From contig JBLDXI010000021.1 of the NCBI GenBank assembly GCA_047495785.1, forward strand, positions 124,001 through 188,000: a DNA stretch of 64,000 bases, read 5' to 3'. The DNA is from Lepidodermella squamata (lineage: Eukaryota; Animalia; Gastrotricha). Positions 11,227 through 63,736 of the stretch are shown piece by piece. The notes beneath the pieces were generated by a model. It did no database searches and had not been told where the DNA came from. It worked only from the letters and a program-made list of their open reading frames with translations. A program made the translations under genes and the position numbers. Position 1 is the first letter of the stretch; each line of letters starts with the position of its first letter.

Positions 11227-13459
11227 TCAGTCAGAACAAGGTGGTTGGTACAAATTGAAATAAGCTGCAGCCCAAGTATTGGTCGCGAAGAATACGATTA
11301 TCACGCCGATTATATTCATACCAATCCCGCACAGCGCCTAAAAATAGAAAATCAGATAAGTAAAATAATCCGCTGGCACGCATACCATGTCAACAATGCG
11401 TAGTCGATTGGTTGAAAATACCAGTGCATTAGGCGGCGTAGCTACAGGTAGCATGAAGGCAAATGCAGCCGAAAGAGCCGTGGGGAATAGGAAGAGTAAA
11501 GGACTGACATTCAAATCTTTCGCCAATTTCTCCATGATCGGAGAAATCAAGGTGACGCAGGCGATATTTGACATGAATTCCGTCATACATGCAACCATGA
11601 TTGAAGTCATGAGGACGCATAGACTCAGCGGGATACCTTCCATTATGTTCTTGAAAACTGGGGCAATGACGGCTGGCAGGCCTGAATCTTGCGCTCCAGC
11701 TGCAGCTGCCATTCCACCTCCTAGCAGAAGGATAACTCCAAAAGGGAAGTCTTTATCAACCTGCTTCCATTTAAGCAAAGGTGGCGGTATCTTGGCACTA
11801 GCTGAGCGGAACGAAGGTATCTCACTTGGAAATACGAAAAGGAAGGACGATACTAAAATTGTCGCTGTTGATTCTTTCACGTATTTTGGCGCGATTATCC
11901 CCCAACCTATGAAGTCAGCCCCTTGCCCCGTTGACATTTGCCTTGTTATTAGAAGGATGATTAACAACAGACAATGGGCTAATACGGCGTATTGTTGGAA
12001 ACCCATTGGATCAAGTTGGGAATAGAGTTGCGTTACAACCGCTGTTATTCTTTCAGCCTGCTTCTCTGCGTTAGTTTTCCGACTTTTTTCCTCCTCACTT
12101 TTCTTCTTGCCGAATAAGGCCCGCCAAGGCTCTGCTATCCATACTGCATAAACGTACCTATAAAAGGAAACGTGAAGGATGAGTTTCATGTGTGAGATCC
12201 TTACCTGTAGCCAAGGAAGAAGAACTGAAGCCAGAACCAAGCAATAAATATGAACATGTATCCAACGGGTACGCCGAATACTAGCCAAGATGTGAATGTC
12301 ACTGGTTGCGTACAGTTGAGACCTTCAAAGGCCTGGTCAGCTCGCTCTTTCATTACCAGGTTAGTTGGAGTGCCAATCAGGGTGCACATACCTCCGATTG
12401 ACGCACTGTAAGCTGCAGCGATAAGAAGCATCTTCTCGAGACCATCAATCGTCTTTTTCGACAAAACAGCCCCATCCTCAGGTTCTACTTCCTCATTCGT
12501 CGCAGCTGTAGTCGATTGAACAGCACTGATTGCTGTTGAGACAGTTTGAGACTCTATCTCCACACCCGGCTGGACGCTTTCACCATCGTCAATGACATCA
12601 CGCATCTGATCGGGCACATCGACTGGTAGTTCGTGCAGAGCTTTGATTTCGAGGATCCCGGAATTCGTTCGACCAAGATGGTGTAGTTCGATATCATGGG
12701 TATCAAAATTCGGTTCGACATCCTCGCCCACTGTCATTTTAACATTCTGTTCCGTTACAGCTGAAGTTATTGTTGAGCAGTCGGAGGTAGATCTTTCAAG
12801 GGTCTGAATGGCGTCTCCGTCACCTTTAGGCGATTTTTCCTTCTCAGATGCCTCCCGCAACTCGTCGATGATTCCCTTAACAATTGGCAGATGTAAAGCG
12901 CACGACATTGTGTTATTTGTGAACTGAAAAAAATCGAATTAATTCAAGTATTGCTAGAAGACTTTAATGATACCATTGATAAGAAGCAAGCTGACATCAT
13001 GGTACCGAATAACAGCCACCGCGGTTGGGGGCCAACTGTCAGTAGAATTCTCAGAGCAAATCTTTTGTGGAGATTCGCGCTTTCAAAGGCTATGACCATA
13101 ATGTAACTGCCGACGAAAGCCATGTTGACTTCCTATTAGGAGAAAAGTCCGCTTTCACGAAATCTTCCCATGTGCTTTATAAGACTTACGCTCATGTATT
13201 TCGGCGCCAATTCTTTTGCTGTCGTGATTTTCAGTAATGGATACAAGAACATCGGGATCAATGCTGTAACAGCGATAGGCAGGCATTCACTCGTCCAGAA
13301 TACGACAAGCATCAACAGAACAAAGGTACATCGTGCTGGCTTCTGATACTCGGTCCCGTCGTAGAGAAACAATAGCGAGAGTATGCAAGGTGTCAATATT
13401 GAAATGAGGTAGCTTCGCCAAGCAAAGGCTTGCCTTGCAATGTGAAGAAATTTAACCAT
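11227..13459 (-). CDS. SLC13 family Na+/dicarboxylate-citrate/sulfate cotransporter (Indy-like), paralog A
   Basis: FWTSECLPIAVTAL, NLHKRFAL, AAYSASIGGMCTLIGTPTNL, LLGGGMA, TEFMSNIA, FAFMLPVATPPNAL. Last exon ends NTWAAAYFNLYQPPCSD*. Confidence 0.93.
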
Positions 13460-18673: not shown

Positions 18674-21180
18674 TCAATGAGAGCATGGAGCTTGGAAAAG
18701 CGAGAAGTACGAATTACCCCACGTATTGACGGCGGTGAAAACAACCAAGATGCCGATGAGATTCATACCGAGTCCGCATAGTACCATGTCCTTTATTTTG
18801 AGGCGATTCGTTGAAAATACGAGCGCGTTAGGAAGGGTCGCCACAGGTAGCATGAACGCAAAAGAAGCCGATAGCGTTGTAGGAAATAGGAAGAGAAGCG
18901 GATTCACATGAAGTTCGAAAGCCTGACAATGAAAAATAGCAAGCTTAAAAATCAGAGATTTGACAATTTGCTCGGAGTTGTTCACTAAGGATAGCTGTTC
19001 ACGTGAATCCTTAGGTTCAAAGGTCGTAATCATGGGAAGCCATGCACCATATTTTTCGAATAATATGACAGGCTGGCCACAGTCGGGAATTTCGAATCGC
19101 TCAGGTGCCAACATGGTTCAAGTCATTTTGGCCATTGTCTCGAATTTTCTCAGACAATTTCCCCAGAACAATTATAAGATTATTCCGCATTTTTTTCCAG
19201 GAATTAACTTTTATAAACATGTTTATTTTGAGGATTGTAAGAAATGAAAAAATAGAGAAATCATTTTAAATTGATTAAAAATTATTTAGAAATTATTTTA
19301 AATTTATAGATATTTGAAAAAATTTGAAAAGATTCGCCAATAATTAATGACTAAATTTGATTAATTGAAAAGCTATCCAGCATTTTTTGCTAAACATTCA
19401 ATAATAGGATCGAAAAAATGAGCTATCCTTACCAATTCCTCCATCACCGGTGAGATCAATGTGACACAAGCGACATTAGACATGACCTCAGTCATCGCTG
19501 CGACGAAAATCGACGTAATTAAAACTGTAAGACTGAACGGCATATCTTTGACCAGATCGTGAAATACTGGCGCGATAAGGAGAGGCAGGCCAGATTCCTG
19601 GGCTCCATAAGTCGCAGCCATGCCTCCTCCTAAAAGCAATATAACTCCAAAAGGAAACGACTCCTCAACTTGCGACCACTTCAGCAAGGGCTCCGGCGGC
19701 TGTTTCGTGTCAGCCATCGACGGCCATTTCGATGGGAATAGGAACATAGATGCCGTTATTAGGATTGCTGCCGTAGATTCTTCGACATACTCGGGCGCGA
19801 CTATGCCCCAACCGACGTAGTCATGCGAATCTCCAGTTGACATTTGCCGCGTTATCAGAAGTAAAACTAGCAGAATACAATGCGCTAAAACAGCATATTG
19901 ACGGAACCCCATCGGTTCTAATTGAGCGTTTAGTTGTTCGATAACAGCCGTAACTCGTTCCGCCTGTTTCTCCGCCTTCACTTGCGCCCGAGTTGCGACC
20001 CGATTTTGCGCAGGGAAAAAGCATCGAAATGGCTGGGTGATCCAGACTCGATAGACATATTTCGGCCCGAGGAAGAAAATTTGAAGCCAGAACCATGAGA
20101 TGAAGATGAAAAGATAGCCAACGGGAACACCGATAACCAGCCAACTCGTGAAGGTTATAGGGTGACTAGTGCAGTTGTAGTGCAGAAACACCTCATCGAC
20201 TCGTTCTTTCATGATTAAATTAGTCGGAGTTCCAATCAGCGTACACATACCGCCGATTGACGAACTATAAGCCGCTGCGATCAACAACATTTTCTCCAGG
20301 CCAGTGATAGCTTTCGGCGATAAGGCGCTCTCCTCTTCCTCCAACTCCTCCGCCTTAATAGGAGGTTCAGTTACTTCCGATTTCTCAATTTCCGGCTCAG
20401 CAACGCTTTCAGTCGAACTTTCAACTGGGTTGCTGCTGTCCGAAGAATTGTTGGAAAATGAAGTTTCATCTGTCCCAGTTTCTTGGATAGTTTCGACAAT
20501 CGTAACAACCGTCGGGCTCTCCTTCAACCCATCATCGCCTGATTTCAGGCTTTGCTTCTTCGAAGCTTCTCGAAGTTCGTCTATGATACCCTTCACGATC
20601 GGAAGATGCAGCGCGCATGAAACAGTGTTATTCGTAAACTAAAAATCGAAATTTCAGGAATTTTTTTTAAATTTTTTCCCGAAATTTTACCATGGATAGG
20701 AAGCAAGCAGACATCATTGTACCGAAGAGGAGCCAGCGAGGCTGTGGGCCGACAATTTTCAGAATTCGAAGCGCCAGTCGTTTATGGAGATTGGCCCGTT
20801 CGAACGCGATCACCATGATGTAACTGCCCATAAAGGCCATGATAACTTCCTGAATTAATCCTCCTTAAATATTTTTAAATTATTCTTAGTAATTTTCTTA
20901 CGTTCATGTATTTCGGCGCGACTTCTTTAGCTGTGACGATTCGTAATAACGGGTATAGGAACATCGGTAGAAGAGCCGTGACGGCGATTGGGATGCATTC
21001 ACTTGTCCAGAAAACAACGAGTAGCAGCAGAACGAAGCTGCATCGCGCCGGTTTTTGGTACTCGGTTCCGTCGTAGAGGAACAACAGCGACAAGACGGAC
21101 GGGGCGAGGATGGCGATGAGGTAACTTCGCCACACCCAAATTATCTTTAAAACCGGTGGACAACTGCCGCATGCTGGCAT
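18674..21180 (-). CDS. SLC13 family transporter, paralog C
   Basis: FWTSECIPIAVTAL, AAYSSSIGGMCTLIGTPTNL, TEVMSNVA, FAFMLPVATLPNAL. Ends NTWGNSYFSLFQAPCSH*. Confidence 0.92.
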
Positions 21181-35148: not shown

Positions 35149-38100
35149 TTATTCAGATGAGATTTTACGAGATGTTGAGATAATTTTTGTAGACATCAAA
35201 AATGGGTCATTATAAGCAATCGTTCTGGCTATCATCAACGCATCTACAGCTTTTCCACTCGTCAGAGCCACCAGAATTTTGTCGAAATTTTCACGTAAAA
35301 CTAGGTCTAAACGAGACAGATTTTTCAGCCCACGCGGGTAGGAATAAATCGAGGCAAGTAGTTCTAACGCATCGGCTTCACTCAGGCTTTTCAAATCGCC
35401 GGCAGAGCGGAAAATGTTGAAACGCGGCGATTCGTCATGTTCGCTCGGAATTTTCGCCATTTGCGCAAATTTATCCGCCGTCATTTTGCGAATACTCCGC
35501 AGAACTGGTACTAACATTTCGTCGAATTGCGGCCGGCGGGTCGGTTGCGGCGGCGAATAACGCCTCCGTCGACGCGAACTACTCGCAATTTCGTCCAAAT
35601 TTGAGTTGGCGATGTAGTCCGCCGCATCGATTAAACTATTCGCAAATATATTTCCGGGTGAATTTTGGCTCGATTTTTCTGAATTTCGATTCGAATTTAC
35701 GCATTTTTTCAGTAATATACTAACAAAATCTGTCAATCCATTTGAAGGATGGGCGATGCAATAGGCACCAATTGCGAGTTTCATCGACAGATCCATCGAG
35801 TCGAAAACTGCGGGTAATTGCTCGAAAAAAGCTAATTGACTCCTTTCAAGGTAAATTTGCCCTTGACCTCCAACTGATTGACAACCGCAAGGCATTGACT
35901 GAAATTGAGTTGAAGCTTCAAAGTACAAACGGCACCGGTTGTAGGTCAATTCAAGGCATTGGTACCACTCGACGACATCCTCCGCCAACATTTCCCCGAT
36001 TTTTGAGATCAGGCCGTGATTCATGTCCGAGTTTATAATTAAGGTGGCATAAATCGCTCGCCCCAACAAATTCGGCTCAACATTCGAAAAAGAGGCCGCT
36101 CGGAGGCAATTCAGCAAAATTAGCACATTTTCGTTAGAATCAGATACACCCCTCGAAATTTCTAGCATTATTTCAATAATTGTCGACGAGCAAATTAATC
36201 GGACTGTCAATAAATGGCTTGAAGCCGGGTGGCAAGATAGGATGAGTAGTAGAAAAACCGGCAGTAAATTATCGTTCGCTAAACCAGTCAGGCTTAACGA
36301 ATCCAGAATCCAATCAATCGGCGAAGATGGTTGAAAATTCGACCCGGTCACGTCGTGGTAGTGTTTAGTCAACGTGTTGCCCAGGGCGTTGTAACTCGCG
36401 ACTAGGTCTCGCAGTTCAATCGGCACGGAATCGACGGAACTCAGGCCAATTGATGAGAAGGTCGATGATAAATTCGAGCCGGCTAATTCGGGTGATTTCA
36501 GGCCGATGAATAGGAGATTGACGGCGAAATGCAACGCCAGGTGGATGTCGACGGTTCGAGCCGAGGATGAGTTGACCAGGCGGGCTGTTATGCGTTCGAA
36601 CGAGGCCAGCGCGACTGATAGGTAGATGTGGGAGACGCTTTGCGGCGGCAGGATTTTGCTGATTCGCATGTACCACAGGCTCATGTTGAGAGCCCAGGCG
36701 ACCAAGGCGGCTGGAGGACCATTGTCACTGCCTAAAATAATGATAAGAGACGTAATTTTAGCGATTTTAACAGAAAAATAGTAGAATTATATTTTTCAGT
36801 TTTATAGGCTCTTTTGTACAATGCTTTCCATTCAGGGCTTCAAATCGGACTTTTCCGAGATCGGACTGACTTTTACGCAGCTACGTAGCCTGCTTTCACC
36901 TTGAAAGGAGGCATTGCAGCGGCTTGAAAAGCGGTTTCATCAAAATGAAGTATCTTTGAAGTAAATTCAACGAAATAAGGCCCCATCTAAATTTTGCCAA
37001 CACTGTCAACTTTTCTTTGCATATTGACTCATCATAGCGACCCCGATTGCTCAGTCACGGGAGGACCCGAAAATTCACCCAGCGAAAACTTCGACATCCG
37101 TGCCCCGCGTCAACGTTAATGCTCAACGTTTTCATCTATTTCCCAATAGGACACCGACCCAGTTTTCGGGCCCATTGGTTTACGAGCTGAATCATCGTTC
37201 ACGGTAGTGCCAGTCGACGACATTCTCGTACCTCAACTAACATGGAACTTCATTTCACCAACTGATTTAGCGGCGATTCAGCTGAACGAAACTAGACGCT
37301 TCACCGACCCGTTAGGTTTCGTCAGCCAGGAAGAAACCCCAGCGCCTGTCACGCATACAAAAAGCGGCATTGTATGTACTTTTATTACTCCTGATTTGTT
37401 CAATTTTCAGTTTTTCAGAATCGTCCGCTGACAAAAATGGACTTCACTCTAAAGCTATCGCCTCTGGTCAGCGTAAAAATGTGTGTATGGGAAGACCAAA
37501 TTCCCGCCCTCAAACACGCGACCAAACCGAAAATCGTGGCCTTCAAACACGCGACAATTCAGCGCTCGGAAAGTTTCGGTCTTCAGGTCTCCTGCTAGTC
37601 AACCCTGACATAGAAGAAGCCTTAGTGCTGGTACCAATGCGAAAATAACATTTTCACAGTGCATCGTTACTACTCATTTTTCATCATATTATCATTTCAT
37701 TAAACCAGTTATCACATCCAATTAATCATGCTGAGGTCAAGTCATTTCTACGTAATTTGACAGATGTCAATGATCAACTTCTGGATTATTGGCCTTTCAT
37801 TGAGATCGTACATAACGAAAATTCTTGGAACGAGAAAGATCAATGCTACATGGAGAGCTACATTACAATTTGTTTCCGCTATGGGCCGAGCGTTGAGCAT
37901 TTTCGTCAAATGAACGGTGTCCTACAATGGGACGAGTGGCACTGGTCAAACATTCAAATCATACCAACACCAGGTTTCCCTCCCAAGACGATGAAAATCT
38001 TGGAGAACATCTTGTAAGATAAATTCTCAGCTTCAAAAAGGCGAAATTCCTTGGATAACTCTCAAATAGGCGCAGTTCGCAAATGAGTCCAACAAAATTC

Positions 38101-55449: not shown

Positions 55450-55779
55450 TTAAAATTGAGTAATTTTGCGCCCAATTTCACGCTCGTGGATGAAAGCTTT
55501 ATTCGGGCTGTGACTCGTGAACACCATCGGCTTGAGCGGGTAAACCACGCTGATATGGCGCCGTTTCTCCGGCGGCGTCGCCCAGTGAATATCGTTGAAT
55601 CGCCGCTGCATTGGCCAGTACTGATGATCGACCGAATTACGGCTCCTCTTCGAACCGGCCTTCATATTTTTCGCAGCTGTTTCGCTTCGATTTTTACCAG
55701 AATTTTTCTCGGCTGCACTACGGCTCGTGACGTCCTCATCGTCACTATCAACCGATTTTTTGCTCCTGCCACAGCCCAT
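55450..55779 (-). CDS. Uncharacterised myristoylation-signal family, member 1 (MGCGRSKK...YPLKPMVF...RKITQF*)
   Basis: Single-exon ORF with an MGxxxSK start and a C-terminal motif shared with three neighbours. Confidence 0.8.
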   Translation of the reverse strand: MGCGRSKKSVDSDDEDVTSRSAAEKNSGKNRSETAAKNMKAGSKRSRNSVDHQYWPMQRRFNDIHWATPPEKRRHISVVYPLKPMVFTSHSPNKAFIHEREIGRKITQF

Positions 55780-55976
55780 TGATAACATTTAACTTAAAAT
55801 ATCGGAGTATCAAAATAATAATCTAAACCATCTAAAAATTAAAAATAAATAGATGAAATTAAAAATTATTATTGTAAAAATTATTGAAAGTGAAAACAGT
55901 CGCACCAGGTGAGCACCTTGAAATAGCTTCGTGAAAGTAACAACAGCAGTTGTGTAAAAGGCATCGGAATGTAGCT

Positions 55977-56774
55977 CTAATAGGAAGTGACTTTTCGAAT
56001 GACGTCTTTCTGATAATACTTGACAGGATCACTGCTGCTCAACGTGAATACCATTGGAGGCAATGGGTAAGTTTTTCGACGGCCGTTACTGCTGATACCA
56101 GTGGAAACGCTGACGTTGCTATTAGTTATCTCTGGGTTGGCTTGGAACATAGCAGCCTGATTGTCCGGATCCGATGGTGGTTTGTTTATTTCGCCCAAAT
56201 TCGCAGTATTTTTCTTCCATTTTTGGCGCCGCGGGGGTGCGGAATCTGTCTGATCTCCGCTATCAGTCATCGCTTCACTACTACCGATTTCAACGTTATC
56301 GACTTGATTAGGATGGATTGGACGAGGCTTTTTGATCGGCACAGATTTCCTCGGACTAATATCAGGCTTCAGTTTCGGAACATTCACTGGGGTGGAAGGT
56401 GGTTTCCTAGTTTCGCTGATTGGCTCTTTTTTGTTCAAATTTCTAGTTCGCCGGCCATCAACTGGCGAAGACGGCAACGCGCCTTCCTCTTCATCGAGTG
56501 ATTTCCCGCGAAATCGAGACATTTTACTGTCGAAAACAGTTCGAGTCCGCTGTCGCTTGACTGAATCGTCCTCCGCCTCGCCTGTTGTTGTATCCATTGG
56601 TGATGAGGTCTCGATGCCTGAATCGCCGCTTTTTATTGAAGACGGAGTTGCGAGTTCGATTATTGCTGTCGGCTCTTCATCTTTCGAAGCAAAATTGTCC
56701 AAACTGGGTCGGAATTCTAGTGCCAAAGTTTCGCTCGATTGCGATTGCTTGGTTTTGCTTCCACCACCTCCCAT
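55977..56774 (-). CDS. Uncharacterised myristoylation-signal family, member 2 (MGGGGSKT...YPLPPMVF...RKVTSY*)
   Basis: Single-exon ORF with a low-complexity S/P/K/E body and the shared C-terminal motif. Confidence 0.82.
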   Translation of the reverse strand: MGGGGSKTKQSQSSETLALEFRPSLDNFASKDEEPTAIIELATPSSIKSGDSGIETSSPMDTTTGEAEDDSVKRQRTRTVFDSKMSRFRGKSLDEEEGALPSSPVDGRRTRNLNKKEPISETRKPPSTPVNVPKLKPDISPRKSVPIKKPRPIHPNQVDNVEIGSSEAMTDSGDQTDSAPPRRQKWKKNTANLGEINKPPSDPDNQAAMFQANPEITNSNVSVSTGISSNGRRKTYPLPPMVFTLSSSDPVKYYQKDVIRKVTSY

Positions 56775-57141
56775 TAAATTAAACCCACTAAAAATAGAAA
56801 ATTGAACTACATTAATCTTGAATATCATTTTATGGCGGTGAAAAATGACCGGTAAATATCATAATTTTGATAAAACGTGAAATCAACGGTATTTTTAGCT
56901 GTCACCAAAATTCGTGTGCGATAGATATTGAGCGGAAAATTGAAAAAGTGTCGCTAATAGGGAAGATCTTCGAAAATTTCGTGCAAGTAAATCATTGATA
57001 GGAAAGACAAGGAAAAGGGCAGAAATATTTTTAATAAAGCTAATTTGGGAGCACTTGAATCACCAATGCAAAAATCAAGTTGACGATTTGAGAAAAATAG
57101 CGCCAAAAATTTGAACACCTTGAAAATTGTTAAATCAATTT

Positions 57142-57753
57142 CTAATATGACGTGACTTTCCGACTTAAATCGTGGCTGTTGCGAACAAATTTGTTGATGT
57201 CTTGATTTTGCTCGCGGTACGTAATGAAAACCATAGGCGGTAACGGGTAACGGGTGACGCGATGCGTGACCAGCGATTCTCCGTCGTCGTGGTTTCGGAT
57301 TGTTACATCATCATAGGCGTCTTCTTCCCCACCACTGCCGATCGTTCCACCATCTGAATTGTGACTATCGTGCCTGGAACGGCGGCGATTTTTCGCAAGG
57401 GATTTCCCAGTTATTACCTTATTCTTCACGCCGTGGCTGTCGTAGTAAAATTCGCCAGCATCGCCATCATCAACAGAATTTGGATGTTGAGCTCGGCTAC
57501 TTTTCCCGCGTCTAGTCGATCGTCCGTCATCGTTTGAAGCTTTTTTGCCTAGGCGACTTTTCCCCGATTTCGCCTCGGTAATATTATCAATATCATTTTC
57601 GTTCCTTCGAGCGCCGATTTTGTTCGATTTCAAGCTTCGTCCGTCTGAACCGCTTGTCTTGCCCCGCTTCAAACTTTTGACCTCCTCGTCCTCTGAAGAG
57701 GTGGCAGCAGGTGGTGGTGGCACTCCCTTCTTTTTACTGCCGCCAAGACCCAT
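57142..57753 (-). CDS. Uncharacterised myristoylation-signal family, member 3 (MGLGGSKK...YPLPPMVF...RKVTSY*)
   Basis: Single-exon ORF with a charged disordered body and the shared C-terminal motif. Confidence 0.85.
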   Translation of the reverse strand: MGLGGSKKKGVPPPPAATSSEDEEVKSLKRGKTSGSDGRSLKSNKIGARRNENDIDNITEAKSGKSRLGKKASNDDGRSTRRGKSSRAQHPNSVDDGDAGEFYYDSHGVKNKVITGKSLAKNRRRSRHDSHNSDGGTIGSGGEEDAYDDVTIRNHDDGESLVTHRVTRYPLPPMVFITYREQNQDINKFVRNSHDLSRKVTSY

Positions 57754-57897
57754 GGGTTAAAAAATAAATAAAAAATCTAAAAAATTAGAAAAAAAGTTAG
57801 AAAAAAATGTGATTATTTGAAAATTCAGCAGCAACTTTTTGATCACTCGGGCGGGCAGATTATCAAACAGTTTTTATAAAAACTTGAATTTTGATTC

Positions 57898-58296
57898 TCA
57901 GTAGCGAGTCACTTTTCTGGCCATATCCCTCTCTTGCCGTAGCACAGTCTCCGGGTTGTAGCTGGCGAACACCATCGGAGGTAAAGGAAAGGTTATTTTC
58001 TTCGGTTTCTGCTCCTCTTCCTCCTCCTCTCCCTCTTCTTCGTTCGAGTCGTAGATCTCCTCCTCCTCGTCGTCTTCTGTTCGTTTGGATGCTAGTGACT
58101 GTCGACTTCCTCGTAGCGCTGTAGTTTTCTCTCGATCGAGGCCGGGTTTGCCTGCTTTGGTTTTTTCGCGTTCCAATTTCACCGTCTTCTCGCGCTTCAG
58201 CGCTCCTCCAGTTTTCTTGCGGCCTTTTTTGGGCGTTTCAGGTTCCGGTTCAGTCTCAGGCTCAGGTTCTGCTGCTTTAGTTGATTTGGAGCCCAT
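57898..58296 (-). CDS. Uncharacterised myristoylation-signal family, member 4 (MGSKSTK...FPLPPMVF...RKVTRY*)
   Basis: Single-exon ORF with three L(K/E/D)REKT repeats, a poly-Glu tract and the shared C-terminal motif. Confidence 0.85.
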   Translation of the reverse strand: MGSKSTKAAEPEPETEPEPETPKKGRKKTGGALKREKTVKLEREKTKAGKPGLDREKTTALRGSRQSLASKRTEDDEEEEIYDSNEEEGEEEEEEQKPKKITFPLPPMVFASYNPETVLRQERDMARKVTRY

Positions 58297-59587
58297 TTTC
58301 GTGTTCTGGCTTTAAAAAGCCCTAAACACTAAAACGGATAATTAATAAAAAATCTCATTCATTCATATATGGGTGGCACTTTTCGAGAAAACTACTAACG
58401 GATCCAGTCGATAATGTTGTAATACGTATAGCGCAAGTATCTGTCTGTCATCGGTGATTTTCTACGCACGGCTGATCGCGTGCTTGCCTGAATTTATTGG
58501 CTTAAAATTGCAGTGGTGTTAAAAATGCACGCGCAAATAATATACGTGAGAGCGACCTTGCCGACGCCCCTTAGCAACCGAACCGGACCGGAAGCCAAAA
58601 TCGCCTTTTCATATAGCCGTCTACGCTCCTTCCTGCTGGCTCTGTGACATGAAAACTTTGCGGAAAGAAACCTATTAATAATTAATAGTCCAAGTGCGAA
58701 AAGAAACCTTGAATTTTCAAATTTTTCGGCAGACGGTGTATCACGTGACTCAGTTCAAAGTTATACTTAGGCCAACATAGCGTGAGTCATAGATAAAACC
58801 GAAAAATCTGTGTAAAATTGAGGAGACTGCAAAGATTTGAATGAATGGGGCCAAAATTTTAATATTCATCTCCAATTTCCACTGAAATTTGAATAGAAAG
58901 AGACGGATTTTTTTAATTGATGCCCAACATTTTAGCTGATCGATAAATCAATTTATATAAATATTGAATAAGAGTACGCGTTCTGCTTTTGGAATATTAT
59001 TGAATTATCGAGATTTATGTTATTTTCCTCTTTTTCAATTGTTCGAATATTTTTCAGATAAATGATAATGACTGTTAATATAGCTGATGAGCAACCGAGC
59101 TGTGATGACATTCTTCGAACTCAGCCGATGGTTGACAGAAAAAATCGAACTCAGTCTGTATTTCGAATGCACTCAAATTTTATTATACTCTTACAAGAGC
59201 CACGTGATTCAGCCTGTGCCACAGCCAATCCTCAATAATTCATGTAATAGTAGAGAGAAAGCGCAGCACTTGAACAGCCGTGGGCTATATAGCGAATCAT
59301 CATTTTCCACACTATAAGAGATAAACAGCCAAGAATGCACTCTTATCACTTGGAAGCCACGCTTAGAATAGCTGTGATTTTTACAAAAAAAATTAATGCG
59401 CTTTTTTTTTCTTAAACGAACTTTAATCGATGAAATGATAGCACCACGCTTGTTCTCGCATTCAGATGTTATGACTTTTGTGGGCCCATCAAACGTACTA
59501 CTATGCGTACTCAACAACAATTTATTATATAGAAAAATTACCACAAAATTCTGTTTATTATTCAATCATTGTTGGTATTATATCGAC

Positions 59588-61235
59588 ATGCAAATAGAGC
59601 AGGTACAATAAAACTAAATTTTTTAGCTCAAATTTAATTATTTTGCCTTGTTAGCTTCTGACCTGTTCTTTGTGCTCACTGCCGTTTTCTAATCCTAAAA
59701 TACTGCCGAAATGCGGGCACACCTTCTGCTTCAACTGCCTCAAAAAGTGGACTTCGACCAATCAAGGATCTATCGCCTGTCCAGAATGTAAAACCGTTTC
59801 ACTGCTATCAATTAACGAAGGTCAAACTGAAAATCCAGGTTAAATTACAACCTTTGAAATTATCATGGAAATAAATCGCCGTCTTTTGTCATAATAGATT
59901 TAAATCGCGAACTACTTCCCGAAGATTTGCCGTCGAACCGGCTTGTTGAAAGGATGCTTCACAACCTGGCTTCTGCGTCTAATCAAGAACAAGGGCCGTC
60001 GATCTCGAAATGCGCGTTCTACCAGGCAAATCACGATAAAATGTGCCGGCATTGCGGTTCCAAATTTTGTGAACATTGCCTCTTTCAGCATCTTGAGGTC
60101 ATGAAAATCGAGCTGTTTTGGATGGCCATCAGAGTAAAAATTTTATTCTGTTTTTCATTCAATTTATTTCACGTAATTTTTTTTAGCTTGACTCGCGATT
60201 TTACAAACTGAGCCACCTGCTTCGGATGAAATACCCTGCTCGAAGGAGAAAATCAAGTAACTGGTCTAAAATTTTTTCATGGTGCCATTACCCTTCGGAA
60301 GCGCCCGAGGACGAGGTGAAAATCATGGCCCATAATCAGCGTCAAGGAGTAGAAAAAATTACGGCTCTTAATCGCCTCTACGAAACATTCAAAGGCAGCA
60401 TAATCGAAGCCTATAGTCTCTCACTTCAGACAATCCTGAGTCTTTCTTTCGATAATCTATTGTCGGTCCATGAAGCGCTGCTTCAATACGATGAAAAGGT
60501 TAAATTAATTTTATTAAGAATATTTTTTTTTATTTTTTTTCTCATCAGATGGGCGAGCTTGAATTTGAATTTTCGGACGACCTTCGTTATTTTATTTACA
60601 AACGACCAGCTAATCATAACAGGGTATTCCTTGATTTTCTACGACTTCACGGCGCCGCTGGTCGAGGCGATTCGCATTTATTGGAAAAACTGCTTCTATC
60701 AAAACATCCGAAACCTCGCGATCGGTTCTCAAATTTGATGAAACTTTATTCGAAAAGTTGGCAATCGATAATTGCGAATCATGTCAATGCAAGCGATTTT
60801 AACAAAACGCCCTTAATTCAAGCTGGAGAAAACGGCCATCTCGACTGTGTAAGGCTGCTAATCGAAGCCGGTGCTGATCTGAGCGCGAGAGTTGAGGATG
60901 CTAGGAGCTCGGCGACGATTCACCTGGCAGCTGAAAACGGGCACTTTTCAATCGTGAAATTTTTGTTGGAAAAAGACGCCGCTTTAACTCAGTTATTGGA
61001 TGCCAACGGCTATACTGCTATACAACGCGCTGCTGATGCTGGACAAACTGGTGTGGTAATTGCTTGTCTGCTTGAGATTCAACTGCAGGATTCGTCGTGC
61101 AATTTGAAGCGAGCAGTTGAAGAAGCTGGACAAATTTACTCGAGAGCCATTCAAAAGAGTCAACTAGACTTGATTCGTGCGTTGATCAGAACATTCCCGG
61201 ATCTGCTTTCTGTAAATGAGGTATTAATGTCATAA
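59588..61235 (+). CDS. RING-HC + B-box-like + helical region + ankyrin repeats (TRIM-like E3 ligase); 3' end uncertain
   Basis: Spliced MQIEQ|LLTCSLC...PKILPKCGHTFCFNC...IACPEC (C3HC4), then LPSNRLV, CRHCGSKFCEHCLFQH, and ankyrins TPLIQAGENGHLDCVRLLIEAGAD, TIHLAAENGHFSIVKFLL, TAIQRAADAGQ. A GT donor after 61221 may lead to further exons. Confidence 0.82.
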
Positions 61236-63102: not shown

Positions 63103-63736
63103 ATGGCTGGGTTGAAACCGCTAGCCTCTATGCCGCACGAAGATGTTTATTTACTCGACACAAATTTGGTTATCGGCTACTTGAATAATGACATTGCCGG
63201 ATGGAAGGAATGGGCTGATGAGCATATCAGTCAAGGTAAGCATAATTCAGTCTTAATGATTACAACGATTACACGCAGTTCTTACAAACAACTTAGGGAA
63301 GAAGTTCTATTTACTACAACAGAGTGTTCAAGAAGTTGCAGTAAAACATCCACAATTGCCAGATGGATTCGAGCCTTTGAAACTAGAGGATGATGGCTAT
63401 GGCATCCCGCAACTAAAACTTGATAGTGTCTACCAACAAATCGCTGATGAATTCAACATAAATGTGAACGAGAGAGTGAAGCTCAAGAAAGACATCGAAT
63501 TAATTTCGGAAGCTGGCTATTATGCTGGATTTGCCGACATCTCACAAATATCAGACGAAGATATTTTCGCCGGTCGAGTTGTTTTTGCATCCAACAACTA
63601 TGCGATCATCGAGCGTTTGCTGTCTACCAAAGAAAAGACCGACAAGCTTGAGAAGATATTGGACGACAACGGCTTTGAACATCTCATTACAGTTCGTTTT
63701 GTGTCGAATGCGCAAGCTTGGACTGATTTCTTCTAA
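63103..63736 (+). CDS. Stand-alone PIN-domain (VapC-like) putative ribonuclease, 190 aa, one intron (63236-63296)
   Basis: YLLDTNLVI (beta1 Asp), SVQE, KDIELISEA, VVFASNN. Joining 63103-63235 to 63297-63736 through a GT-AG intron gives one continuous 573-nt frame. Confidence 0.75.

Follow-up and report, generated by a model that had tools for sequence, protein, structure and literature searches.

A conserved array of four small genes encoding candidate lipid-anchored, disordered proteins in the gastrotrich Lepidodermella squamata

What might be the role of four small consecutive genes whose products begin alike and end alike, and have middles that cannot be aligned? The question is raised by a stretch of 64,000 nucleotides of the gastrotrich Lepidodermella squamata (assembly GCA_047495785.1, contig JBLDXI010000021.1, positions 124,001 to 188,000 of the forward strand). 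This whole stretch is called the window here, and positions are given in its coordinates unless another contig is named. We have analyzed four tandem open reading frames (ORFs) between positions 55450 and 58296 of the window, searched for their relatives and compared their products with known protein families and short binding motifs. Judged by these sequence comparisons, the four ORFs are real coding genes of an undescribed, lineage-restricted family, found in this genome and in one deeply diverged relative. Their products are probably lipid-anchored, disordered adaptors with a docking tail. With the assembly of L. squamata (122 Mb, 157 contigs), published in 2024, the phylum Gastrotricha received its first genome (PMC11660948).

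The array consists of four intronless ORFs in a row on the minus strand, designated D, C, B and A in array order. Gene D (57898-58296), the first, encodes 132 amino acids (aa), starts with MGSKSTK and ends with the tail FPLPPMVF...RKVTRY. Gene C (57142-57753) encodes 203 aa starting with MGLGGSKKK. Gene B (55977-56774) encodes 265 aa from MGGGGSK, or 283 aa if counted from an upstream ATG at 56828 (ORF 55977-56828). Gene A (55450-55779), the last, encodes 109 aa from MGCGRSK and ends with YPLKPMVF...RKITQF; an in-frame ATG at 55788 lies three codons before its MG codons, and the ORF from this first ATG (55450-55788) encodes 112 aa. Each ORF is unbroken from the MG codons to the stop, and thus each gene has a single coding exon. 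The gaps between the genes, which all lie on one strand, are 144, 367 and 197 nucleotides (nt). When a profile of the tails was searched against the whole genome (121.2 Mb, 151 contigs), the family proved to have four copies, all of them in the array. No repeats or element genes were found around it. ORFs of 77 to 183 aa are also present on the plus strand, opposite all four genes (55456-55782, 55950-56501, 56332-56805 and 57891-58124). These antisense ORFs are best seen as by-products of codon composition, since the MG start and the tail that are conserved across species sit in the minus-strand frame.

In the alignments all four proteins end with the same pattern, [YF]PL[PK]PMVF, a spacer, and [DE]-x-x-RK[VI]T-x-[YF] before the stop. 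The residues invariant across the four are M1, G2 and K7 at the start and P-L-x-P-M-V-F and R-K-x-T in the tail. The tail module is 30 aa long in D (57901-57990), B (55980-56069) and A (55453-55542), all on the minus strand as is the 35-aa module of C (57145-57249), in which the spacer carries an insertion of five residues. In D, for example, the module consists of an EVH1-type octapeptide, a short helix and the RKVT-x-Y end. A first-pass annotation of the window, made from the sequence alone, had described four tandem single-coding-exon ORFs with MG...K starts and a common C-terminal end, and the ORF list and the alignments agree with this. Its tail pattern also holds as far as the motif is concerned, but the spacer length it gave, 14 to 19 residues, was one too high; C has 18 residues from MVF to the acidic position, and the other three genes have 13.

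A profile built from the four tails was compared with 1.84 billion cluster representatives and gave seven matches at an expected value (E) of 0.001 or less, of which three are genuine. The genuine matches (P0002, P0005 and P0006; E = 1e-9, 1.3e-5 and 2.5e-4) are proteins of 106, 118 and 91 aa that start with MGCGSSK, MGSCCC and MGFGNSK, respectively, and carry the module at the C-terminal end. The remaining matches (P0001, P0003, P0004 and P0007) are long proteins made of repeats whose partial matches add up; they contain neither PLPP nor RK[VI]T and were rejected. The tail pattern is thus more than a chance resemblance, since a profile made only from the tails in the window retrieved the tails of MG-starting proteins in another organism. 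Other searches yielded little. None of eight proteins, the four described here and four of the relative introduced below, has a match in Pfam, and a literature search for the motif string found no paper containing it. The best score in the ESM Atlas was 0.76, below use. Word-index protein searches were uninformative: with the tail of C there was no candidate, and with the full-length alignment the divergent relative g2 (see below) was the single match among the 8000 candidates listed, a list filled by low-complexity words. A search of metagenome contigs with YPLPPMVF as a DNA pattern gave 55 matches, none of which continued into RK[VI]T or reached a stop where the tail would require one, and these were discarded as chance. 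The sole match in a profile search of the PDB was G-Y-P-L-P-P-Q-I-F of SH3BGRL, over 13 residues with E = 1.9.

The genes for the three genuine matches follow one another on shared ENA metagenome contigs, where a fourth and divergent family member accompanies them. This second array begins with g1 (L010:3030-3350, 106 aa), which pairs with D, and continues with the divergent g2 (L010:3593-3988), which starts with MGCCNSK, ends with PTKY and retains in its tail only L-V-P-L-K-F, R-D and T-K-Y-stop. The third gene is g3 (L010:4143-4418) and the array ends with g4 (L010:4557-4913, 118 aa), which pairs with A; the gaps are 243, 155 and 139 bp. The seven contigs concerned (L010-L016) are 98.2 to 99.6% identical and represent a single organism, either as its haplotypes or as very close strains. 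D and g1 match with a BLASTP E of 3e-15 and are 67% identical over the last 30 aa, while A and g4 match with E = 3e-12 over 58 aa. The latter match includes an extra conserved element, YW-x4-RFNDI-x-W-x2-PP (55570-55620 on the minus strand in A), which is common only to these two genes. On these alignments the first and last genes of the two arrays are clear orthologs. A C2H2 zinc-finger gene lies directly after the array of the relative; its best match in L. squamata (C21:110524-111706; 58% identity, E = 4e-77) is on the same contig and the same (minus) strand as our array, about 68 kb downstream and outside the window. Other genes lie between the array and the zinc-finger gene in L. squamata, among them a ten-DOMON b561 gene and SLC13. 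A control enzyme with a PALP domain is 49 to 75% identical between the two organisms. The split between them is therefore deep, and the array as a whole, or at a minimum the genes at its two ends, is older than this split. The relative is probably another gastrotrich.

The seven haplotypes of the relative also allow us to see which parts of the proteins are constrained. They differ by 33 coding substitutions, 22 nonsynonymous and 11 synonymous, and by 8 intergenic ones. The coding substitutions include no frameshift and no stop. The changes spare P-L-x-P-M-x-F and [RH]-K-x-T, and only one falls within the last three residues, at the variable x of T-x-F in g3. The middles appear to evolve almost freely, the pattern expected of a disordered linker between two functional ends. 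When L010:2900-5100 is compared with L011-L016, polymorphism is higher in the coding regions, with 33 changes over 1338 sites (g2 alone contributes 19), than in the spacers, with 8 over 861. This is unusual and may reflect constrained processing signals, diversifying proteins or just small numbers.

An AlphaFold2 model of gene A, built on the alignment of the eight sequences, has no tertiary fold (mean predicted local distance difference test score, pLDDT, 59.5; predicted template modelling score 0.17). Its ordered parts are the 10-residue blocks over residues 71-90, which include the octapeptide (mean pLDDT 75 to 83), and a helix at residues 92-101. In the model the octapeptide is part of an extended segment in a disordered region. 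Since only the motif and one helix are ordered, the module appears to be a docking peptide rather than a domain. Overall, these results corroborate much of what the first-pass annotation had proposed. The alignments across both organisms place the conserved part in a C-terminal module. The variable, disordered middle is reflected both in the absence of a fold in the model and in the fast evolution among haplotypes. The N-myristoylation consensus at the start recurs as a sequence pattern in all eight members. The tail profile that it suggested running against protein collections retrieved no described family, and with neither a Pfam match nor a named relative nor a paper with the motif, the family is indeed an unrecognised one.

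At the N-terminus, Gly2 follows the initiator Met in all eight members from the two organisms. Position 6 is S or T in seven of the eight and Cys in g4, and K7 is also found in seven. In N-myristoyltransferase substrates position 6 is generally a small or hydroxyl residue (S, T, A, G, C or N), Pro is absent from position 7, and basic residues are preferred at positions 7 and 8. The PROSITE myristoylation pattern disfavours Phe at position 3; this is the residue found there in g3. A Cys is present within positions 3-6 of A, g1, g2 and g4, and the remaining members have lysines after the motif.

A TAG acceptor-like site with a T-rich tract precedes the ATG of the MG start by 13 to 43 nt in all eight genes, and in seven of them, gene A being the exception, there is no ATG between the two. 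On the minus strand of the window these sites are at 58322-58324 for D (25 nt before the ATG with no ATG between, and with a second site at 58329-58331), at 57777-57779 for C (23 nt before the ATG, with the T-rich tract ahead), at 56788-56790 for B (13 nt before the MG ATG) and at 55823-55825 for A (43 nt before the MG ATG, with a second site at 55832-55834). Use of the site in B would remove the in-frame ATG at 56828. The tight spacing on one strand in both organisms fits an operon, and the array is a candidate spliced-leader operon. Nematode SL1 and one bdelloid rotifer leader are both absent from the genome.

From these features a mechanism can be proposed in which each protein has three parts. 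The anchor would be an SH4-like signal: the Met would be removed and Gly2 myristoylated, and the hold on the membrane could be strengthened in A, g1, g2 and g4 by a palmitoyl group on Cys3 or a nearby Cys, and in B, C, D and g3 by the lysines next in the chain. Next would come a charged, fast-evolving and intrinsically disordered linker of about 50 to 220 residues. The 30 to 35 residues at the C-terminus would then form a composite docking peptide. The first half of this module, [YF]-P-L-P-P-M-V-F, would serve as a ligand of EVH1 domains (Homer and/or Ena/VASP) and be followed by the short helix. The free end, R-K-[VI]-T-x-[YF], would be a second site, either a class I PDZ-type ligand or, after phosphorylation of the Thr by a basophilic kinase, a 14-3-3 mode III site. 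Such proteins would recruit cytoplasmic scaffold proteins to the membrane or hold them there. We consider the anchored, disordered architecture with its docking tail reasonably probable, and our confidence in the identity of the partners is lower.

The EVH1 part of this proposal concerns the proline half of the module, for which the first-pass annotation offered no interpretation, and comes from the fit of the octapeptide to motifs studied in detail elsewhere. The Ena/VASP motif is [FWYL]-P-x-hydrophobic-P and the Homer motif is PPxxF, with the relaxed form [PIALV]Pxx[FWY]; the two can overlap as [FWYL]-P-x-hydrophobic-P-x-x-[FWY], and peptides of this overlapping form bind Homer1 better (PMC11237882). 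For binding to Homer1, Pro1 and, at position 4, an aromatic residue are essential and Pro0 is less so; Pro is disfavoured at position 5 and D or N preferred at position 6 (PMC11237882). Six of the eight members have the octapeptide in its overlapping and canonical form, and seven fit the relaxed Homer form. All eight share Pro1 and Phe4, A departs only at position 0, where it has Lys, and even g2 retains V-P-x-x-F. Position 5 is not Pro in seven of eight members, and three have D or N at position 6. Possible partners are encoded in the genome. A Homer EVH1 domain (G000:C7:749566-749871) aligns without gaps to 1ddv at E = 7e-38 and retains the pocket residues F14, I16, W24, F74, Q76 and G89, and an Ena/VASP EVH1 domain is found at C17:3397613-3397927. 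We tentatively suggest that the octapeptide may be the ligand of an EVH1 partner of the Homer and/or Ena/VASP type.

The extreme C-terminus is T-x-[YFM]-stop in all eight members. Six of them have R-K before the Thr, with the Arg at -3 relative to the Thr; g4 has His for this Arg and g2 has no basic residues. The Thr at -2 is kept even in g2, which has lost R-K, and since its last residue is kept as well, a free T-x-hydrophobic end of the PDZ-like type is favoured over a pure kinase-site reading. By pattern, R-K-[VI]-T fits a basophilic kinase site and, once phosphorylated, would take the form of a 14-3-3 mode III site, which is R-x-x-pS/pT-x(1-2)-COOH. This 14-3-3 reading of the C-terminus is a rival to the PDZ reading and would fit equally well. 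Inspection of the tail led us to drop several other short motifs: PP1 RVxF (wrong spacing), CPI-17-type RVTVKY (wrong register), LC8 TQT (in gene A only), class I SH3 [RK]xxPxxP (in gene B only), WW PPxY, and calcineurin PxIxIT and LxVP.

A number of observations weigh against the proposed anchor and docking sites. The ATG three codons before MG in gene A, if used, would block myristoylation. Exact-protein look-ups for A (109 and 112 aa), B, C and D found nothing on record, and none of the four proteins is present in a collection of 15 billion proteins. With nonsynonymous and synonymous changes in the relative at 22 to 11, there is little constraint on most of each protein. For a class I PDZ ligand, an aromatic last residue is atypical. 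Matches to short motifs are weak evidence in general, and several classes of proline motif were tried before EVH1 fitted. EVH1 binding leaves unexplained the conservation of Met2 and Val3 of the octapeptide and of the helix. The flank upstream of the octapeptide is basic, whereas Ena/VASP EVH1 domains favour acidic flanks (PMC11237882). In the screen from which the motif preferences are taken, 97% of the instances of the relaxed Homer motif failed to enrich (PMC11237882).

Several of these points would be accounted for if the architecture were the same but the whole 30-residue module bound a single partner that is neither EVH1 nor PDZ, the EVH1 match being coincidental. Candidates would be a kinase or phosphatase that takes R-K-V-T as substrate or pseudosubstrate, or else a lineage-specific protein. 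Conservation of Met2, Val3, the helix and [DE]-x-x-R-K goes beyond what EVH1 or PDZ binding needs, motif and helix are ordered jointly in the AlphaFold model, the Lys of gene A at position 0 departs from the canonical motif, and most motif instances, as just mentioned, fail in screens. However, the residues invariant in the family are those found experimentally to be essential in EVH1 ligands, Pro1 and the aromatic position-4 residue. Moreover, g2 keeps just V-P-x-x-F and T-x-Y and has lost the rest, a pattern that points to two independent short motifs more than to a single long interface. A single partner for the module is possible, and we do not think it probable. We also judge it improbable that the extreme C-terminus is the functional unit by itself, that is, a class I PDZ ligand that a basophilic kinase would switch at the Thr at -2 and that is carried on tethers of meaningful lengths. 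The constancy of T-x-[YFM]-COOH in all members and of R-K before the Thr in six would agree with this, but it leaves out the best-conserved block, P-L-x-P-M-x-F; the aromatic end is unusual for class I PDZ ligands and the 14-3-3 mode III site fits equally. Orthologs differ in length as well, D having 132 aa and g1 106, A having 109 and g4 118, so the suggestion of the first-pass annotation that different tether lengths matter finds no support.

The most sceptical explanation is that the ORFs are not functional genes at all and are instead chance ORFs, decaying duplicates or pieces of mobile elements or viruses (for example, a myristoylated Gag-like protein with a proline motif resembling a late domain). 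The products that look-ups failed to find, the high ratio of nonsynonymous to synonymous changes in the middles and the long antisense ORFs that overlap all four genes could be understood in this way. However, a relative that is 49 to 75% identical in the control enzyme retains both termini, the intact frames and the array itself, there is one locus per genome, and synteny with the zinc-finger gene is loose but present. An acceptor-like splice site lies before every MG codon and the surroundings are free of repeats and element genes. We therefore regard this explanation as very improbable, and return to the preferred reading, lipid-anchored disordered adaptors with a docking tail.

A more specific form of the preferred reading would make the array an ancient, possibly operon-transcribed set of four "receptor-tail mimics", gastrotrich-specific proteins in which a lipid-anchored dual ligand for Homer and Ena/VASP EVH1 domains is combined with a phospho-regulated PDZ or 14-3-3 end. 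Such a specific combination is unlikely as a whole. If it were true, the mimics would build Homer-type scaffolds at membranes, or compete for them, without any receptor, and would constitute a minimal and genetically tractable scaffold-anchoring system. If the general reading holds, the family is a compact natural membrane adaptor in which a disordered linker joins two short docking motifs to an acylation signal, encoded by a four-gene array that has been kept across a deep split. It would then offer a simple system for the study of lipid-tethered EVH1, PDZ or 14-3-3 motifs and a marker family for gastrotrich genomics. One more orphan family in L. squamata is not in itself surprising, since the first genome of a phylum holds many orphan families.

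Among the neighbouring features of the window, the opposite-strand neighbour of the array (59670-61235, plus strand) includes a RING finger exon (C3HC4, E = 5e-9), ankyrin repeats (E = 2e-21) and an exon rich in Cys and His that weakly matches FYVE or B-box-like domains. It is probably one gene of the E3-ligase type, oriented divergently to gene D. Two exon ORFs of the SLC13 family (Na/sulfate-citrate symporter) are located at 11341-12288 and 19376-20596 on the minus strand. The best named relatives of the SLC13 exon, in vertebrates and molluscs and none in a rotifer, are about 32% identical, as against 54 to 59% for metagenome proteins; the lineage is thus isolated in the databases. A 518-aa ORF at 35152-36705 (minus strand) has no Pfam match at E of 0.001 or less. 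Two overlapping ORFs of 96 and 126 aa at 63103-63736 (plus strand) have no Pfam match at E of 0.01 or less; the first opens with a D-T-N-L-V-I-G stretch reminiscent of the N-termini of PIN domains.

The features of the family can be compared, one by one, with those of known systems. The predicted anchor resembles SH4-type dual acylation signals, which occur in Src-family kinases (Lyn, Yes) and G-alpha i/o subunits, and the proteins as a whole recall acylated disordered proteins such as BASP1/CAP-23, GAP-43, MARCKS and smAKAP. They share with these proteins the start MG-C-x-x-S-K or MG-x3-S-K, the lysines (an arrangement that pairs myristate with either palmitate or basic residues) and the small, charged, disordered bodies. 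However, there is no homology past the first seven residues, the known proteins are not known to carry such a C-terminal module, and the family has no Pfam match. The predicted phosphorylated end can be set beside 14-3-3 mode III sites, of which the C-terminal PKA site of AANAT is an example. In six of the eight members R-K-[VI]-T-x-[YF]-COOH has the Arg at -3 and the Thr two residues from the end, as these sites do. The likeness is lost in g4, with His for Arg, and in g2, which keeps T-x-Y without basic residues.

The octapeptide itself nearly equals G-Y-P-L-P-P-Q-I-F of SH3BGRL. In the SH3BGR/SH3BGRL family PLPPQIF combines an SH3 PxxP and a Homer PPxxF site, is buried and is unlikely to bind (PMC12827327). 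There the peptide belongs to a thioredoxin fold, whereas here there is no fold; the match at E = 1.9 does not indicate homology, and no SH3BGR match was found in Pfam. A closer parallel is provided by the overlapping Ena/VASP-Homer ligands, such as the peptides of DVL3 and FAT1, along with the classical PPxxF sites of group I metabotropic glutamate receptors (mGluR), Shank and drebrin (PMC11237882); the octapeptide matches the overlapping form in six of eight members. As in these ligands the motif is in a disordered region. The Met and Val at the x positions are conserved here and free in the known ligands, the upstream flank is basic here, and A has Lys at position 0. The known carriers are receptors or large scaffolds, whereas the carriers here are tiny proteins with a predicted lipid anchor.

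The arrangement of the whole tail is most reminiscent of group I mGluR. The distal C-tails of these receptors have a class I PDZ-binding C-terminus and, some tens of residues before it, a Homer PPxxF site. At a membrane, both systems would present a Homer-type proline motif, then a short spacer and last a free [ST]-x-hydrophobic end. The receptor tail hangs from seven helices, whereas a predicted lipid anchor on a disordered chain would take their place here; there is no sequence homology between the two, and the last residue here is aromatic. The comparison is one of functional analogy only.

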